This document shows positions 3,197 to 20,576 of a stretch of DNA of 64,000 bases, one piece after another; position 1 is the first letter of the stretch; the number at the start of each line of letters is the position of its first letter. The notes below the pieces were generated by a model that had not been told where the DNA came from, made no database searches, and saw only the letters and a program-made list of their open reading frames with translations. The stretch lies in sequence record NC_041972.1. One strand, written 5' to 3'. Both the position numbers and the translations under genes were made by a program.

Positions 3197-4335
3197 TGGC
3201 ACTGGATCAAGAGTATTATGAAAAGGCATTGGGCATCCTACTGACCAAAGGTTTCTCTAACCAAGAAGCTGACCAGATCGCCACCACGCTTTCGGTATAT
3301 CTCCCGATGCGTTTCATCAAAGCTGGTGTATGGGCACTCATACCTTACGACCAGCATCCGGCTGATTCCCTGGCATTTAAACACATGCGGCTACTCGACC
3401 GTATCCCTGAGTTAAAGAAACCAGTGATCCTTCAAATGCCGACTGACTTTACTTACACCACGTATGGTCAGGAGTATTGCCCTGGTGCTGATGCACCGAC
3501 ATACACCACAGGGCCCGATGGTTATACACATCATCCGGTTGGTTGGGAAAGTGGGATTACTGGCATGCCAGGCGTAATGGGTCCGGCTGGGGATGACAAT
3601 ATTGAAGTCAGTGATCTGACCTGTGATCACCCCCAAGGCGATTTTAGACTATCGTTACCTGCCGAATCAATGGTTAGTCAGTTTACCGTCGTCATGCGGG
3701 TTGGTGGTAAACCTATTAAAATGACGCTGGAAGAACTCATCCAGGAAATTGGAGGTTATGACAAACTTCCTGCTTCTGCACGTGCTGCGATTGATCGTGT
3801 TATGGAAGAGCATCGCAATGCCCCTGTATCTACCGTATCTGTCCGCACGCCGTTACCAGGCGGAGTATCTCAGGAGCAAGCTAACTATCTGAAACTGGGC
3901 GACCTCAGCGACATCGAAGGGATCAAACGGGCTTACCCGCTCATCGACGAGAAAACAGCTGAACGGATGTCTAAGTTGCATTGTCAGCTTAATCAGCATA
4001 TCGCGCGGGTTCATCGTGAGCCGAGAGACGTTGAGGTATTTGATCTGCTTGCGGGCGATCACTCTCAGCGGATGTTCCAATCTCGTCATGCTAAACGTCA
4101 GTACCCAAACAGTTTGTTTGAGAAGTTCCTGCCGGATCAAGCAGACATCGATGAACCCGAGGGCATGACTGTTAAAATCAAAACCCACAGCGTACGTCAC
4201 TTCGGACACGGTCTTGAAATTAGCACGCCTTTGTTTGGCCAATCCCACAAAAACCCTACTGGACCACAAACCATGCCGGGGCTTGAGAAAGGCCGTGATG
4301 GTAAACGTAAACGTAATAAGAAGGGCAGACGATGA
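3196..4335 (+). CDS. Hypothetical protein (379 aa) with short Gly-X-Y stub and basic tail
   Basis: TAATG coupling; GITGMPGVMGPAG; ends KRKRNKKGRR. Confidence 0.8.
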   Translation: MALDQEYYEKALGILLTKGFSNQEADQIATTLSVYLPMRFIKAGVWALIPYDQHPADSLAFKHMRLLDRIPELKKPVILQMPTDFTYTTYGQEYCPGADAPTYTTGPDGYTHHPVGWESGITGMPGVMGPAGDDNIEVSDLTCDHPQGDFRLSLPAESMVSQFTVVMRVGGKPIKMTLEELIQEIGGYDKLPASARAAIDRVMEEHRNAPVSTVSVRTPLPGGVSQEQANYLKLGDLSDIEGIKRAYPLIDEKTAERMSKLHCQLNQHIARVHREPRDVEVFDLLAGDHSQRMFQSRHAKRQYPNSLFEKFLPDQADIDEPEGMTVKIKTHSVRHFGHGLEISTPLFGQSHKNPTGPQTMPGLEKGRDGKRKRNKKGRR

Positions 4336-5105
4336 TCGATCGCAGTTTTGAAGGTGGCTGGGAGTCTATACTGCAATGGCATGGGTTTGCTGATCGTGCT
4401 AAACAGGGGCTGTCTGAGCACTTTGTTATCGTGGATTACGGAACCCAGGCAGAGGCCGCCGCTTTTGAGCAATTGACAGCGCTGGCGGAGAAAGTGAAGT
4501 ATGTCTCAGTCGAGCGAGTTAAAGCCGTTGACTTTACCCCGACGCTTGTACGTACGCTACATGAACGTGAACATGGCTGGCATTACTGTCATGTCATGGG
4601 GCGATGTGGTTACGGCGGCCACGGGATAATGATCGGTGATAATGGCGGCTGGACAGGCGCGCACGGCGGTGCAGGTGATGCAGGTCAGCCCTCAACACCT
4701 GATGATGGCTCGATACTATACCAGACAGATTACAGTAGTCTCGGTATCCAGGACCGAGGATTTACTACGCTGCAAGACATGATGGAAAATGCCAGCCCTT
4801 ACGATTACCCTCGGGAGATTCGTATAGTAGGGGATCGGCATGACCCGGATGTCAAAGCGTTAACGCAGGCGGTGATAAAGCTTGTTGGGCGTCGAGCTAT
4901 CAAAGTAGTTAGCATACCGCATGCCGACATGATGTATAGACCCGGCCCGCACCGAACGTATAACCTCGCGCCGGAGAAATACCGGGAGCGATTTGACATT
5001 GCTTATAAACAAGCATTAGAAAATGTCAACAAGGCGGCCATCCTACCGTATGCCCGTGGGCCATTGCAGTCTGTTCTGGCGACTCAACGCAAGAAACACT
5101 TTTAA
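4332..5105 (+). CDS. Hypothetical protein (257 aa)
   Basis: ATGA overlap with the upstream gene. Confidence 0.8.
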   Translation: MIDRSFEGGWESILQWHGFADRAKQGLSEHFVIVDYGTQAEAAAFEQLTALAEKVKYVSVERVKAVDFTPTLVRTLHEREHGWHYCHVMGRCGYGGHGIMIGDNGGWTGAHGGAGDAGQPSTPDDGSILYQTDYSSLGIQDRGFTTLQDMMENASPYDYPREIRIVGDRHDPDVKALTQAVIKLVGRRAIKVVSIPHADMMYRPGPHRTYNLAPEKYRERFDIAYKQALENVNKAAILPYARGPLQSVLATQRKKHF

Positions 5106-13858: not shown

Positions 13859-14575
13859 ATGTATGGTCTATTGATCTTAGCACTACCCCAGTCACCGTAT
13901 GTCCACATGAGTGCGATGACTGCGGACAGGTTTACTGAACTGCTCCCACAGTTCCAGAAAGAGCTCGATGCAGATATCTTTCCCAACGTCTGTTTCCAAG
14001 GCGCGTTTAACGTCAGCAACACTCGTACTGTAACGCCCTTATTCATTCCGTGTAGTGGTTTGGTATCGGCACGGGAGTTGGGTTACGAACAGATCCGTAA
14101 TATTCTTGCTAACCCAGAGAAAGAGATCCAGCACGTCACCAACATCGGTGATTGGTTAGGTCGTCCGGGTAAGGTGATGTTCGATAATGCGGATGGATCT
14201 GTGGATGAGGGCGTTGTGACCGATATGTACAAATATCTGGTACATGAGAGAAGAGAGCGTTCTGTCTTTCGGTTCAGTCCTGTTGATCTCAGTATCACCG
14301 ATACCGAACCATTGCCAACTCACCTCTACCCGCGTGATCATTTCTACGACCAGGTCTACATCGACAAAGACGGTGAGCGTGCTTTCCTGTCTTACGGGTC
14401 GTGCGGTGAAGAAGGCTGTGCCATAGAGCCAGGCGAAGAGAAACCCGTGCAAGTGTACGGCGTTACCTACTCATCACTGGATGAAGCGGCCCGTTGCTAT
14501 AACCTGCCTGAGCAGTACGTGAAAGAACGCGTTGAGTCTGACAGCCTTGAATGGCTGGAGTGGTCATATTTGTAA
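13859..14575 (+). CDS. Degenerate GIY-YIG-like protein with C-terminal NUMOD/HTH-like DNA-binding domain (paralog 1)
   Basis: YGLLIL..YVHMS..FPNVCFQGAFN..TNIGDW N-domain; PVQVYGVTYSSLDEAARCYNL C-domain. Confidence 0.65.
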   Translation: MYGLLILALPQSPYVHMSAMTADRFTELLPQFQKELDADIFPNVCFQGAFNVSNTRTVTPLFIPCSGLVSARELGYEQIRNILANPEKEIQHVTNIGDWLGRPGKVMFDNADGSVDEGVVTDMYKYLVHERRERSVFRFSPVDLSITDTEPLPTHLYPRDHFYDQVYIDKDGERAFLSYGSCGEEGCAIEPGEEKPVQVYGVTYSSLDEAARCYNLPEQYVKERVESDSLEWLEWSYL

Positions 14576-14703: not shown

Positions 14704-14901
14704 ATGACCACAAACCCGCAGTTTATTTTCGTGGCTCAGAATTCTGATGCTACACACAGCGTAGAGAAACTGGAAGTAGGACGCGATACCGATACCCAGA
14801 AGAACCTCACGGAACTTCGTAAAGGTTTGCCGTTCGACTTCTCGTTTATCATGTCTGAAGAGGCGATCTATCAACTTCGACAGGCAGGGCACATCAACTA
14901 A
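14704..14901 (+). CDS. Small hypothetical protein (65 aa)
   Basis: ORF in operon context; weak RBS. Confidence 0.55.
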   Translation: MTTNPQFIFVAQNSDATHSVEKLEVGRDTDTQKNLTELRKGLPFDFSFIMSEEAIYQLRQAGHIN

Positions 14902-14916
14902 ACTGCTGAGGTAGTC

Positions 14917-15369
14917 ATGACGAACAAATCGGAGATCTCACACGGTGGTGGCGATCAGCCTATGGAAAAAGAGCAAAGCAACTTATCCGTACTGGTGAAC
15001 TACTCCACAGGTGTGATGGAAGGTGACCGTTTTAATTACTCGGTTGCATTGGCGCTGTTGAAAGACGGCATCAAAGTGAAACGCGAAGACTGGAAGAACG
15101 CTTTCCTGGTGTTCGTCCCGGGTAGTCAGAATGTTGAACTGCCAAAAGGGTCGCCGTATGAAGTCGCACTCCACGGTAAGAAGTCCGTTGCCAATATTCG
15201 TCCGCACATCGATCTGTACACGGAGTACGGTGAATTCGAAGTCGGTTGGACAGCCAACCAGGAAGACACTAACGCCGATGACTGGATGATTGTCTTAGAC
15301 AAGAACACCAATCAAGACGACAGTGCCGACGAAGAGAAAGAGTCCTCAAACGACGACTCGAAGTCATAA
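14917..15369 (+). CDS. DUF2829-family protein (Tad2-like anti-defence sponge candidate)
   Basis: F..ALALLKDGIKVKREDWKNAFLVFVPGS...PHIDL..E.G...W.ANQED..ADDW.IV pattern; GAGGT RBS. Confidence 0.8.
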   Translation: MTNKSEISHGGGDQPMEKEQSNLSVLVNYSTGVMEGDRFNYSVALALLKDGIKVKREDWKNAFLVFVPGSQNVELPKGSPYEVALHGKKSVANIRPHIDLYTEYGEFEVGWTANQEDTNADDWMIVLDKNTNQDDSADEEKESSNDDSKS

Positions 15370-15374
15370 ACCCC

Positions 15375-15403
15375 AGGAGAGCTTCGGCTCTCCTTTTATG
15401 CCC
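15375..15403 (+). terminator. Hairpin plus TTATGCC
   Basis: aggagagc-ttcg-gctctcct-tttatgccc. Confidence 0.75.
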
Positions 15404-15418
15404 ATTAAGGAACATGTC

Positions 15419-15778
15419 ATGAGTGAAAAGAAAGCGTTCGAAGTGGTATTAGACAGTCGTCATGAACCGTACGAGGCTTACCAGTTATTAGTGGCGCGTA
15501 TCAATACGTTATTACGCACCGGTCAAGGCTACCATGAAGTGAAACTCACGAAATGGCAGCTTTACGATAACGGTCTTCTTATCAAAGGAGATGATGATGT
15601 GCATATCTCCTTGTTGCGTCATTTCTATTACGATAAGCAACGCAATACATTTGGTGGTGGCTTCATGACCTTTGAAATCCTGGAAGATCTGGGTCGTTAC
15701 TACAAAGTGTCCGATATCACAGAAGGGATGAGCGAGAACGTTGGTCTCGTCTTTACGATCACGGTAACCACACCATAA
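15419..15778 (+). CDS. T-[AK]-W family paralog 1
   Basis: AAGGA RBS before ATG 15419; EVKLTKWQLYDNGLLIKGDD. Confidence 0.75.
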   Translation: MSEKKAFEVVLDSRHEPYEAYQLLVARINTLLRTGQGYHEVKLTKWQLYDNGLLIKGDDDVHISLLRHFYYDKQRNTFGGGFMTFEILEDLGRYYKVSDITEGMSENVGLVFTITVTTP

Positions 15779-15785
15779 GGAAACT

Positions 15786-16154
15786 GTGATGAAACCACTC
15801 TTCGCCATGAAGTTTGATACCCGGGATGCGGGATTAGGGGATCAGCTCGATCTCTTGCAATCACGGGTTAAGGCTTATTCTAAACACGGCACCATGATCA
15901 AGGATGTAGCGGTGACGGCCTGGGTGGTCTGTTCGGATAACATGCCGGTTGCCGGTGATGACCCTGCTCATGTCAGCATTATCCACCGTTACCGTTACGA
16001 CATCGAACAACAGTGTGTGGTCGGTGGGGTCAGTGCCATGGATGCTCTGCGTGAGATCTGGTCGGCGTATGGTCCTGACTCTACCCTCCCGCCGTTCAGC
16101 CGGATACCCGGTGCTGTCGATATGCAATTTACCTTAACTGTGTTCACTATTTAA
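15786..16154 (+). CDS. T-[AK]-W family paralog 2
   Basis: DVAVTAWVVCSDNMPVAGDD; AAGGA RBS. Confidence 0.75.
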   Translation: MMKPLFAMKFDTRDAGLGDQLDLLQSRVKAYSKHGTMIKDVAVTAWVVCSDNMPVAGDDPAHVSIIHRYRYDIEQQCVVGGVSAMDALREIWSAYGPDSTLPPFSRIPGAVDMQFTLTVFTI

Positions 16155-16167
16155 AGGAGATACCCGT

Positions 16168-16560
16168 ATGGGAGTTTCTACTGCTGCTGCTCGTCGTTCT
16201 AAAGAAGGGGTGTTTACCCGGAGTATTGAAGTGCGTCATGATCACTGGAAACGGGACATCACGGATTTAGGACTGGATGTCCATAACCTGGTGTTGTGTA
16301 AACAGGAGATCGTATCCGTTACCCTCACTGCCTGGCGGGCGTATGATGAGTGCGGTGTATTGCGCGGCAGTGCCAAAGAGTTGAAGTTAGACATTACGGA
16401 ATGGTTCCTCGGTGACAAAGGCCCGGTCATTAATGATGCGATCAAACCTCTCACGTTTGCCTTCATCATTAATCAACAACGCAGCCAACGCACGCCCTGG
16501 GTAAAAGATGTCCGCTTAGGGCTTAACCTGTCCATTGTCTACAAGAGGATTCAGCAATAA
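16168..16560 (+). CDS. T-[AK]-W family paralog 3
   Basis: SVTLTAWRAYDECGVLRGSA; AAGGAG RBS. Confidence 0.75.
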   Translation: MGVSTAAARRSKEGVFTRSIEVRHDHWKRDITDLGLDVHNLVLCKQEIVSVTLTAWRAYDECGVLRGSAKELKLDITEWFLGDKGPVINDAIKPLTFAFIINQQRSQRTPWVKDVRLGLNLSIVYKRIQQ

Positions 16561-16904
16561 TGGAAATTGTCCACCAACTCGATCTTAGCCATGGCTGGGA
16601 ACCCTTCAACCGCCTGAAAGCCGCCTTTGCCAAGAAACCCCCGGAGGCGATCCACATCACTGCCTGGGTCGCTCATGGCTATAAAGGAAACCTCATCGGC
16701 GATGAGCAAGTGGTGAAAGGGTCGTGCCAGGAGTGTCGGATTGATGTGACCCACATCTTCTTTCCCAGTCGGCCTGAGATCTTGATTGGTTTGTCGAGCT
16801 TCATTAACACCATTAATCGTGACGGGCCGGTGAAGATCCCGGCCTGGACCGGATCGATTACTCTTTGTCTTGAATTAGCGATAAGTTATACAGATAGAAT
16901 TTAA
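16560..16904 (+). CDS. T-[AK]-W family paralog 4
   Basis: AIHITAWVAHGYKGNLIGDE; TAATG coupling. Confidence 0.75.
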   Translation: MEIVHQLDLSHGWEPFNRLKAAFAKKPPEAIHITAWVAHGYKGNLIGDEQVVKGSCQECRIDVTHIFFPSRPEILIGLSSFINTINRDGPVKIPAWTGSITLCLELAISYTDRI

Positions 16905-17011
16905 TCGGCATATATTCTGTCTCGTTAGCGTAAGCTCGCTAAAAACCCTTTTAAAGTTTTGTATAACAAACTATCAACTTTGTAGAAAGAAACAAATAGG
17001 AAATTAATCTC

Positions 17012-18124: not shown

Positions 18125-18907
18125 ATGGCTATGACGTTCGAAAAAGAAGGGGACACGTTGCACATTGTGCGACTGAGAACCAAGGGCTGGTACCACATGA
18201 CGGTAACCAGCGATCCTGATGCGAGTATGGATATCGTTAACACGAACTTACGTCAGGGCACTTTTACTGATCCACTTTTACAACACCAGTACGACATCTG
18301 TAAAAAAGAGATGGGGCAAGATCCCAATCCAAATGACATCGTTTTCCACCAGTTCGTGACCACGCCAGACCAGACCGGGTATCAGTCTGGCCACTGGATG
18401 ATTCGTGATCACATTCGCCACGGCTATTCACTGAAGTGCCTGACTAACATCGGTGACTGGCTTTCGACCGCAGCCTATCTTTATATCCCAGACCCTGATG
18501 ATAAAGAGGGCGGTGAGAGAAAATACAAAGTAACTGACTTAGGTAAGTATCTCGACAAGGAAGAGTTATTGGGTCATTCTGACCACCTGCCGATGTATTT
18601 CTTGCCTGATGAGGAACCGGGTGACAGCTATGATGAGTTGATTGAAACCCATCGTCTTCCGCAACCTGACAAAGGTTACTCTTGTGTGGCCATCAAGAAC
18701 GGTATGTCGTTTAGTTTGCTGACGTACAACAACTCCAAGCGGGTGCTTTCAGAAGAGGAAGAACTGCAAACCACAACCGTCCCAGTCAGGGCAGATGGTT
18801 TGCTGTACAGCTCCGTCTTAGAGTTGGCTATGGCTAAGAACGCCCCAGTCTGGTTTGTCTTGGAGATGCTAACCTCCGAAACCGACCCAAACTGGCATTT
18901 CGTCTAA
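18125..18907 (+). CDS. Degenerate GIY-YIG-like protein with C-terminal HTH-like domain (paralog 2)
   Basis: TLHIVRLRTKGWYHMT..LRQGTFTDPLLQHQYD..LTNIGDWL; C-terminal VPVRADGLLYSSVLELA..PNWHFV. Confidence 0.65.
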   Translation: MAMTFEKEGDTLHIVRLRTKGWYHMTVTSDPDASMDIVNTNLRQGTFTDPLLQHQYDICKKEMGQDPNPNDIVFHQFVTTPDQTGYQSGHWMIRDHIRHGYSLKCLTNIGDWLSTAAYLYIPDPDDKEGGERKYKVTDLGKYLDKEELLGHSDHLPMYFLPDEEPGDSYDELIETHRLPQPDKGYSCVAIKNGMSFSLLTYNNSKRVLSEEEELQTTTVPVRADGLLYSSVLELAMAKNAPVWFVLEMLTSETDPNWHFV

Positions 18908-18995: not shown

Positions 18996-20576
18996 GTGAG
19001 TGAAGCTAACCAGAACATCGTAGAAAGCTACGACGACCTGCCGAAGAACGCGCAGAAAGGTGATCGCTATACCGTGCGTGAAGACGCGATCGTTTACGAA
19101 CTCCAGGAAGATGGTTCTTGGAAAGACGTAGACATCAACGAACAGGTTGATCAGGAAAACGAAGAGCAGGCGCAGACCGAAGATGGTCAGCAGTCTGACA
19201 CCGGCGCAACTGATCAGCCAGCCTCTGATGAAGAGAGCGATGCTGATTCGTCTGAAACGGCAGCTACCGATGAAGAAGACCAGGTAGATGACAACGGCGA
19301 TGACAAGCAGACTCCGGCTGAAGAGAAGCAGGAAGAAGCAGCGCAGGCGGTTGATGAAACCCAACCACGTGATGACCCTTACGTACGAGGAGCGAACAGC
19401 GATGCCAATCCGGCACAACCTGAAGATGCGAATCAAACGCAAGATCAGACTGACGAAGCAGGACAAACTCCTGATTCTTCTGACGATACCAACGCGCAGC
19501 AGGAAAGCACTGATGGCGTTGCGACGCAGGATGCGAAAGAGCAGGCTAACATCCCGGAAGGGGTAGATCCTGAAGAAGCGCAACCTGACAACCAGCCACT
19601 GGCGGTAGCGCCGGTTGAACAACCCCCTGTCCAGCACGAAGCGGTCGCGGTTGATCCTAACGCCGACCAACCATCACCTGAAGCGCGTCCAGACAGCAAG
19701 ATCGAAGAAGCAGCTGAACTGAACGCACAGAAAGAAGATGCGGCTCGTGATGAGATCGCTGAAGCCGGTGCCGATGCACAAGCTGCGACCTCTGCTGAGC
19801 AGACTGACGCTGGCAAAGCCAAAGAAGACGCACAGGCTGAAGGCCAGTTGCCGAACGATGGTGCTGCTGATGATGTCGCCGCTGGTAAACCACGTAATGA
19901 CCAGACCTACACCGAAGATCAGAAAGCGGCGAACACGCCAGCGCCTGAAATCGTGCAGGCTCAGGAAAACCATACGTCAGAGCCAGACCCGGTAGTCAGC
20001 CAGGAAGAGATCCATGTGCAGAACGCCACGGACCCTGACCAGCCGACTATTATCCCGCAGGAAGCGAAGTCTGAATCACTGGCGCATCAAGCGGCTGATC
20101 CAACGCAGGAAACTGTGTTTGTTAAGCAGGATGAAAACCTGGACCCGGAAGTGCGTGTGCTGCAACAGCGCATTGAAGAGTACATCGGCAACATGGGTGT
20201 GAACGGTAAGCACGATCGCCGTGACGGTCCGAAGTATCAGGCTCGCCTGTACAAAGACCTGCACTCCATCATGGCGCTGGAGCCAGTGAAGTTCAAGCAA
20301 GTGATGGACTACCTGCTGAACCGTGTGTATGAAGAACGTGCCGGTGCTTTCTCCGACACCTATACGCGCCGTTACTTCGATCAGCTGTCACCGATGCACA
20401 TGCAGACCGATCGCGTGCGTGAGTTTGACAACATCCTGTCGCTGGTAACTACTGTGGGTCATTCCAAAAACCGCAGTCGTGCCCTGCAGCAGGTTGATCT
20501 GCAACGCGCCCTGAAGAACATTCAGGATGCCGGTAAGCAGCAGCGTATGGCAGCGTACTTTGATGCTCTGCGTTAA
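18996..20576 (+). CDS. Acidic low-complexity protein with N-terminal fibre-like module and folded C-terminal domain
   Basis: About 330 aa of D/E/Q/A/P-rich sequence, then an ordinary-composition domain of about 150 aa; AGGAG RBS. Confidence 0.8.
   Translation: MSEANQNIVESYDDLPKNAQKGDRYTVREDAIVYELQEDGSWKDVDINEQVDQENEEQAQTEDGQQSDTGATDQPASDEESDADSSETAATDEEDQVDDNGDDKQTPAEEKQEEAAQAVDETQPRDDPYVRGANSDANPAQPEDANQTQDQTDEAGQTPDSSDDTNAQQESTDGVATQDAKEQANIPEGVDPEEAQPDNQPLAVAPVEQPPVQHEAVAVDPNADQPSPEARPDSKIEEAAELNAQKEDAARDEIAEAGADAQAATSAEQTDAGKAKEDAQAEGQLPNDGAADDVAAGKPRNDQTYTEDQKAANTPAPEIVQAQENHTSEPDPVVSQEEIHVQNATDPDQPTIIPQEAKSESLAHQAADPTQETVFVKQDENLDPEVRVLQQRIEEYIGNMGVNGKHDRRDGPKYQARLYKDLHSIMALEPVKFKQVMDYLLNRVYEERAGAFSDTYTRRYFDQLSPMHMQTDRVREFDNILSLVTTVGHSKNRSRALQQVDLQRALKNIQDAGKQQRMAAYFDALR

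Follow-up and report, generated by a model that had tools for sequence, protein, structure and literature searches.

The window analysed here is a stretch of 64,000 nucleotides from sequence record NC_041972.1, and the subject of this report is an array of four small adjacent genes on its plus strand, gp280, gp281, gp282 and gp283 (hereafter genes A, B, C and D), all annotated as 'hypothetical protein'. Over positions 14900–17000, the window matches Erwinia phage vB_EamM_Deimos-Minion (KU886225, 273.5 kb, genus Agricanvirus) with 100% identity, and RAY, Special G, Simmy50, Ea35-70 and further Agricanvirus members with 93–98%. RAY has been shown by experiment to be a nucleus-forming phage of the Chimalliviridae (PMC10299810, a core-genome paper in which gp280–gp283 are not mentioned).

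Gene A (15419–15778) encodes 119 amino acids (aa) and gene B (15789–16154, with an alternative GTG start at 15786) encodes 121 aa. Both products match phrog_6658 (7.8e-60 and 5.6e-66, respectively), and B is dimorphic in the genus. Gene C (16168–16560) encodes a 130-aa protein (phrog_11644, 4.7e-91) with a basic N-terminal extension and an isoelectric point (pI) of 9.5, and gene D (16560–16904) a 114-aa protein (phrog_11536, 2.9e-80). Each gene represents a subfamily of its own. The genes are tightly packed, with intergenic gaps of 10 and 13 nucleotides followed by an overlap of the D start with the C stop (TAATG). All four products are soluble and free of hydrophobic segments; apart from the basic C, they are acidic to neutral.

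Homology of the four proteins

The initial annotation, made from the sequence alone, had described a T-[AK]-W motif shared by the four open reading frames, together with a C-terminal alternating strand and little other identity. Searched as [VILMF]x[VILMF]T[AK]Wx(9-10)G[DS] in the six frames of the 64 kb, the motif gives four matches, one in each of the four reading frames, and in 200 codon shuffles the same expression gave a mean of 0.01 matches and a maximum of 1. Outside the motif, the identity is as low as had been described, being 25% between A and B, about 26% between C and D, and under the BLAST twilight zone for A or B against C or D. Pairwise BLAST is clear for A with B (E 9e-13) and borderline for A with C (0.001) and C with D (0.004). 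In PHROGs, the four proteins are divided among three families of unknown function, and only faint cross-matches are found between C and D.

Orthologues for profile comparisons were taken from AH06, pEa_SNUABM_37, seven metagenomic/Logan contigs and large protein collections. Comparison of the subfamily alignments by hhalign gave P values of 1.2e-21 for A with B and 6.6e-9 for C with D (probability 95.8%), and of 4.1e-5 for A with C, 4.5e-4 for B with C, 0.008 for A with D and 0.006 for B with D. When merged, the AB and CD alignments matched at P 1.6e-6 (90%) over 89 columns, while controls with unrelated neighbouring families had P values of at least 0.02 in 35/35 pairs. Further, a C/D profile searched against six-frame translations of the complete Deimos-Minion genome found C, D and then solely gene A (E 1.5e-3), and in the pEa_SNUABM_37 genome its single match was the A-like gene (E 3.9e-3). 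The profile comparisons and the genome-wide search thus indicate that A–D are homologous and that the motif they share is not a product of chance. We consider it very probable that the four proteins are one paralog family sharing one fold.

Predicted fold

AlphaFold2 models were made of A from the A/B alignment and of C from the C/D alignment. The A model (mean predicted local distance difference test, pLDDT, 86; predicted template modelling score, pTM, 0.78) has the element order b1-a1-b2-b3-b4-b5-a2-a3-b6, with strands at residues 4–12, 40–50, 53–58, 69–72, 77–80 and 108–118 and helices at 17–33, 84–92 and 97–101. The C model (pLDDT 76, pTM 0.67) shows the same order after a short N-terminal extension. 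In the models, beta2, a long central strand, holds the T-x-W motif, and the C-terminal alternating strand noticed from the letters corresponds to the last beta-strand (A 108–118, C 116–127), so that both can be regarded as hallmarks of the shared fold. Read from the alignment, a conserved Thr and Trp point away from the hydrophobic stripe of beta2, on its opposite face. The predicted layout, beta1-alpha1-beta2-beta3-(beta hairpin)-alpha2-beta6, is of the ferredoxin-like type.

The A model was also compared with the viral structure library BFVD, in which B, C and D orthologues were assigned by phage and length. With the A model as query, its own orthologues came first, followed by the 121-aa protein of RAY (B orthologue; E 3.6e-9, template modelling (TM) score 0.80). 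The 130-aa protein of RAY (C orthologue) was matched with E 1e-4 and TM 0.69/0.64, and the 114-aa protein of Simmy50 (D orthologue) with a probability of 0.99 and TM 0.58/0.61. Four nameless proteins of 156, 115, 103 and 108 aa were matched as well (TM 0.55–0.74), and the lengths of the last three equal those of three array genes of Salmonella phage vB_SalM_SA002. For all later matches listed, TM by query was at most 0.42. A check for differing folds among the four proteins was therefore negative, given that the A and C models agree and that A matches the B, C and D orthologues in BFVD.

Protein D has a CxxC at residues 56–59 (C56 and C59; window 16725–16736), which is kept in AH06 and not found in A, B or C, and a further cysteine, C103. 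The D subfamily may thus have a metal or redox site of its own at the CxxC.

Search for known relatives

The description of the family as unrecognised holds, since searches of Pfam, NCBIfam, PADLOC and PDB were empty. The four proteins had no Pfam match at E <= 1 and no NCBIfam or PADLOC match, and a sequence-profile search of PDB found nothing under E 0.97. Feature searches of the ESM Atlas reached 0.75 for A and 0.50 for C, which is under the stated noise level of 0.8; the lead that they gave, DUF7698, was set aside because Pfam support was absent.

Structure searches were similar in outcome. Foldseek against PDB gave no match at E <= 0.001 for the A or C model, and the best E values (0.22 for A and 0.011 for C) came from Y-family polymerases in both cases. 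A comparison by VIA-align over 48,161 chains reached a best Z of 5.4 for A and 4.6 for C, compared with the tool's stated background best of 7–8. For both models, its best neighbour was the C-terminal domain of acetone carboxylase/hydantoinase beta, and the next neighbours were Y-family polymerase little-finger domains and ribosomal protein S6. These ferredoxin-like matches (Z 4–5.4, 82–108 aligned residues, root-mean-square deviation 3.5–4.5) are below background. A structure search of the ESM Atlas gave a TM of 0.54 to the Hydant_A_C domain, and a search of AlphaFold DB clusters gave no TM by query above 0.42. On the basis of the models, the fold of A–D appears to be without known relatives outside this phage group.

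Distribution

Full HMMER searches with the A/B profile against 1.84 billion representatives found 3 clusters, all of them the family itself, and the C/D profile found 10 clusters over the protein collection. In the phage database, A and C match Erwinia jumbo phages only, and a diverged member from pEa_SNUABM_37 also matches SA002, a phage that has three small genes in the corresponding slot downstream of the RNA polymerase (RNAP) gene. The 124/115-aa type of pEa_SNUABM_37 and SA002 has profile support against C/D (P 8e-5). The 103- and 108-aa types lack profile support and are linked to the family solely by BFVD structural matches to proteins of those lengths. A 118-aa protein of pEa_SNUABM_37 (locus L002, 6048–6404) was rejected as a member, having neither profile nor structural support. 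The family is so far known only from one clade of nucleus-forming Erwinia and Salmonella jumbo phages, and D is confined to Agricanvirus proper, namely Deimos-Minion, its close relatives and AH06.

Array turnover and selection

The initial annotation had proposed a diversified array, and the relatives bear this out: the number of copies changes, alleles are replaced, and gene A has been lost in a natural variant. Across these relatives (loci are given by L numbers where they need to be told apart), the copy number ranges from 1 to 4, and the neighbours in the slot are a Tad2-like gene, gp279 in Deimos-Minion, and a gene for an HD_4 (PF13328) metal-dependent phosphohydrolase. Agricanvirus proper has A-B-C-D with Tad2 present. 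Tad2 is likewise present in L007 and L008, which have A-B-C and an unrelated Cys-rich 143-aa protein in the D slot, in L014, which has A-B-C, a 162-aa protein and the Cys-rich protein, and in L013, which has a B-like gene and C. It is absent from L005, which has B-C, and from pEa_SNUABM_37, which has one A-like gene and a second diverged array. A single A-like gene also occurs among the relatives without such a second array. The HD_4 gene stands in place of Tad2 in the latter two and beside Tad2 in L014 (L005 4080–4700, L014 3922–4542, L002 4776–5402), and is a further candidate for a nucleotide-signal-degrading accessory gene.

The Cys-rich 143-aa protein (phrog_8344), which has a very acidic tail, is found in L005 (6263–6697), L007 (5805–6236) and L008 (6319–6750), and also in L013 and L014, all of them outside Agricanvirus proper. 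It was rejected as a member of the family, as comparison showed it to be unrelated; it may be zinc-binding.

Array genes and backbone diverge to different extents. Compared with Deimos-Minion, L010 has flanking genes of 98–100% protein identity and an A of 97%, and its B is 74% identical. In AH06, the backbone is 85–90% identical and C 34%, and in L008 the backbone is about 78%, A 87% and B 41% identical. The second B allele (74% protein identity) occurs in MadMel, Ea35-70 and L010 (positions 5001–5366 of L010, and 4289–4654 of both L017 and L018), while A, C and D stay 97–100% identical. The two B alleles differ by 45 nonsynonymous and 52 synonymous changes, as compared to 0–3 nonsynonymous changes in A, C and D and 0–5 in neighbouring genes. 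With backbones that are otherwise nearly identical, the B dimorphism is a clear instance of recombinational allele replacement. In one public run, a diverged block lies within B.

Contigs of another public run (X12) join position 15405 to position 15776, by which gene A is removed exactly, with 7 shared bases at the joint. The joint falls in similar sequences upstream of the ribosome-binding sites of A and B.

The ratio of nonsynonymous to synonymous substitution rates (dN/dS) is 0.00–0.14 for all four genes, including 0.04–0.10 for A within the genus and about 0.13 between the B alleles. Divergent alleles with a dN/dS of about 0.13 point to old lineages exchanged by recombination rather than to fast positive selection. 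Because each subfamily is its own orthologous lineage under purifying selection, the copies would be specialised and not redundant. The array evolves by the shuffling, loss and gain of old constrained lineages through recombination, and not by rapid point-mutational diversification.

Neighbouring genes and the intergenic hairpin

The variable island is bracketed by two paralogs that fall in one BLAST cluster, gp277 on the left (13859–14575, plus strand; phrog_6749, 5.3e-134) and gp286 on the right (18125–18907, plus strand; phrog_6749, 1.9e-121). A weak, sub-threshold Pfam match of gp277 is to the I-TevI DNA-binding domain (E 0.0045). The left copy is unusually divergent in the genus (14–24 nonsynonymous changes) and is absent from some relatives. 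Upstream of gp277 lies gp276 (phrog_2962), an RNAP beta' fragment gene. Next to the island, gp287 (18996–20576) encodes 526 aa, of which the first two-thirds are extremely acidic and of low complexity; mass spectrometry of RAY and Deimos-Minion lysates detected it among the 'novel hypothetical proteins' (RAY gp281/Deimos-Minion gp287; PMC6690015).

Within the island, gp278 (14704–14901, plus strand; 65 aa, phrog_11788) precedes Tad2, or the array itself where there is no Tad2, and is conserved with 75–100% protein identity across relatives. The Tad2-like gene gp279 (14917–15369, plus strand) encodes 150 aa matching PF11195 at 4.6e-14 with 53 bits (cut-off 25). It is the upstream neighbour of the array and lies outside the A–D family: A–D have no Pfam match to PF11195, and hhalign of the local Tad2 alignment against A, B, C and D gave P values of at least 0.38.

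Between the stop of the Tad2-like gene (15367–15369) and the start of A lies a GC-rich, terminator-like hairpin on the plus strand (15375–15402), AGGAGAGC-TTCG-GCTCTCCT followed by TTTATGCC, which contains TATG; the stem-loop proper, with a UUCG loop, spans 15375–15394, and the ribosome-binding site AAGGAA comes after TTTATGCC. The hairpin is kept in 7/7 relatives with differing stems and a GAAA or UUCG loop. RNAalifold on the 7 relatives predicts 9 pairs, 5/9 of them with compensatory changes. In L005, it is present though Tad2 is absent. It is one of at least 13 comparable sites in the window, most of them between genes and with (G)CATAA and TTATGC(C) arms (others are, for example, at 653, 5659, 8492, 20597/20621, 21744, 29244, 44570, 57234 and 63082/63108).

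The most economical reading of the hairpin before A would be a factor-independent terminator or RNA-end element, and the class as a whole probably comprises terminators for the phage's own RNA polymerases. TATG is the consensus of phiKZ late promoters, which are used by the non-virion RNAP (PMC4666361). A phiKZ-type late promoter formed by hairpin and TATG was nevertheless downgraded, since in most of these hairpins a (G)CATAA arm on the other side largely complements the TTATGC arm, which makes them extended palindromes or bidirectional terminators. A scan for sigma-70 promoters and terminators found sites no more frequent than in shuffles, and it missed the hairpin at 15375–15394.

The conserved hairpin before A implies that the array is not simply the tail of the Tad2 transcript. 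The initial annotation had pointed to a placement right after a Tad2-like gene, which is not upheld as a linkage. It is not conserved, as L005, pEa_SNUABM_37 and SA002 have family members and no Tad2, and in every relative that has both, a hairpin with compensatory changes and a T-run stand between Tad2 and A.

Possible functions

In the reading that we favour, gp280–gp283 are four anciently diverged paralogs of one small (about 115–130 aa) soluble alpha+beta protein. The genes occupy an accessory slot of plastic content that follows the RNAP beta' gene, and the set of copies differs from phage to phage as genes are gained, lost or replaced by other alleles through recombination. Their products would form a repertoire of non-virion intracellular binders, each for a different host or competing-phage factor, and would serve host takeover or counter-defence as separate modules and not as one fixed complex. 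We give this explanation as a whole, covering paralogy, fold, turnover and binder repertoire, a probability of about 0.5. A putative binder repertoire is suggested by the confinement of the family to one clade, the losability of its members, their modular turnover under purifying selection, and a slot shared with Tad2-like and HD-family phosphohydrolase genes. Also in line with it, A–D are absent among the proteins named in the consulted part of the crude-lysate mass-spectrometry table for RAY and Deimos-Minion (PMC6690015). The putative role in counter-defence or host takeover, which is drawn from genomic context, is tentative; it is the best guess among the functions considered, though somewhat less likely than not. 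A more specific version, which is doubtful, is that the family is a new fold class of counter-defence proteins, that A, B1/B2, C, D and the Salmonella-phage members would each disable its own component of bacterial immunity or tie up its own signal, and that the slot would be a site for exchangeable anti-defence cassettes in nucleus-forming phages of Erwinia and Salmonella.

Several observations weigh against a binder repertoire. Selection on the divergent alleles is purifying rather than positive, unlike what a classic arms race would leave. No solved anti-defence protein (Acr, Tad1/Tad2, Acb, Gad and others) is among the structural matches listed; the entries of anti-CRISPR complexes among the matches are chains of about 300 residues from CRISPR surveillance complexes and not the anti-CRISPR itself. 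Guilt by association with Tad2 is weak, since Tad2 stands behind the hairpin and is absent from several relatives. The conserved place beside an RNAP subunit gene could reflect a role internal to the phage. In addition, no infection transcriptome was found among public runs; the only run labelled as RNA is a wastewater metatranscriptome in which a relative's gene C is represented by a short fragment, and this gives no evidence of timing.

Among the alternatives, it is unlikely that the four proteins are subunits of one hetero-oligomer, for example with A/B and C/D pairs held by joined beta-sheets and the array setting fixed ratios. The tight packing of the genes on one strand, the TAATG overlap of C and D, which is typical of translational coupling, and the nearest paralogy of A with B and of C with D would all suit such an assembly. 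However, the number of members varies from 1 to 4, one natural variant is cleanly without gene A, and B is replaced by a protein allele that differs by 26% while its partners A, C and D do not change to match. The swap of B alleles beside constant partners speaks against an obligate A/B/C/D complex, and a complex prediction for A+B+C+D, with a score of 0.00, counts neither way. It is still less to be expected that the proteins are phage-internal regulators tied to the neighbouring RNAP gene, which would bind nucleic acid or polymerase and tune middle or late transcription or the fate of mRNA. Such a role would agree with the position of the slot, which Erwinia and Salmonella relatives alike keep immediately after the RNAP beta' gene, with a ferredoxin/RRM-like fold that weakly matches the little finger of Y-family polymerases and ribosomal protein S6, and with the basic charge of C (pI 9.5) and the conserved Thr/Trp on the beta2 face opposite the hydrophobic stripe. 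Yet the other three proteins are acidic to neutral, the remaining nucleus-forming phages lack the family despite their common polymerase, the copy number varies and gene A can be lost, and the structural matches are at background level.

The accessory, mosaic behaviour of the genes would also fit with action against other phages, through superinfection exclusion or inter-phage competition, and not against the host. The paralogs on either side of the island show a weak match to the DNA-binding domain of a homing endonuclease, a kind of gene active in inter-phage competition, which is consistent with this proposal. It is improbable all the same, as nothing specific is in its favour and the proteins show no similarity to known exclusion proteins or PADLOC defence models. 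Finally, a coincidental motif, with A/B and C/D being two unrelated families, would account for the division of the proteins into three by PHROGs and for the weak BLAST similarity between A/B and C/D (best E 0.001). This is very improbable and largely refuted, given that the profile–profile P values are far from those of the controls, A is the sole extra match genome-wide, the order of structural elements agrees, and the reciprocal structural matches have TM values of 0.58–0.69.

Significance

Nucleus-forming jumbo phages have many accessory genes to which no function has been assigned, and among these the present locus is a compact and well-defined candidate set, with one new small fold in four specialised copies. 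Natural variants are at hand in the form of a B gene with two alleles, a variant without gene A and relatives with 1–4 copies, and the host is tractable, with green fluorescent protein (GFP) localisation already performed there for 24 other RAY proteins. If the proteins are inhibitors or sponges of host immunity, they would represent a new structural class of anti-defence proteins and would help to explain host-range differences among candidate fire-blight biocontrol phages. If they are phage-internal factors, they would be a lineage-specific addition to the transcription or replication machinery of the phage. The uniting of three PHROG families and several orphans improves annotation as such.

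Comparison with known systems

With Tad2 (PF11195, Thoeris anti-defence 2), A–D share the status of small phage accessory proteins encoded in the same variable slot. They differ from it in showing no sequence or profile similarity, in the hairpin that lies between the genes, and in a co-occurrence that is not constant. With the ferredoxin-like domains (PF19278; 5svb_B and 5l9w_B; the little finger; S6), the A and C models have in common the beta-alpha-beta-beta-alpha-beta layout. There is no sequence signal and there are no common functional residues, the similarity scores are at or under background, and the phage proteins add to the layout a beta hairpin and a short third helix that these domains lack.

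A–D are full-length members of phrog_6658, phrog_11644 and phrog_11536. PHROGs keeps these three families apart, whereas the present analysis unites them, together with the diverged pEa_SNUABM_37 and probably the SA002 members, which match no PHROG. Tandem arrays of diverged small paralogs are a general phenomenon in jumbo phages. Like other such arrays, the one described here consists of small genes arranged head to tail, which share one fold and are conserved slot by slot; its own features are an alpha+beta fold, 1–4 copies, and allele replacement and gene loss between near-identical genomes.

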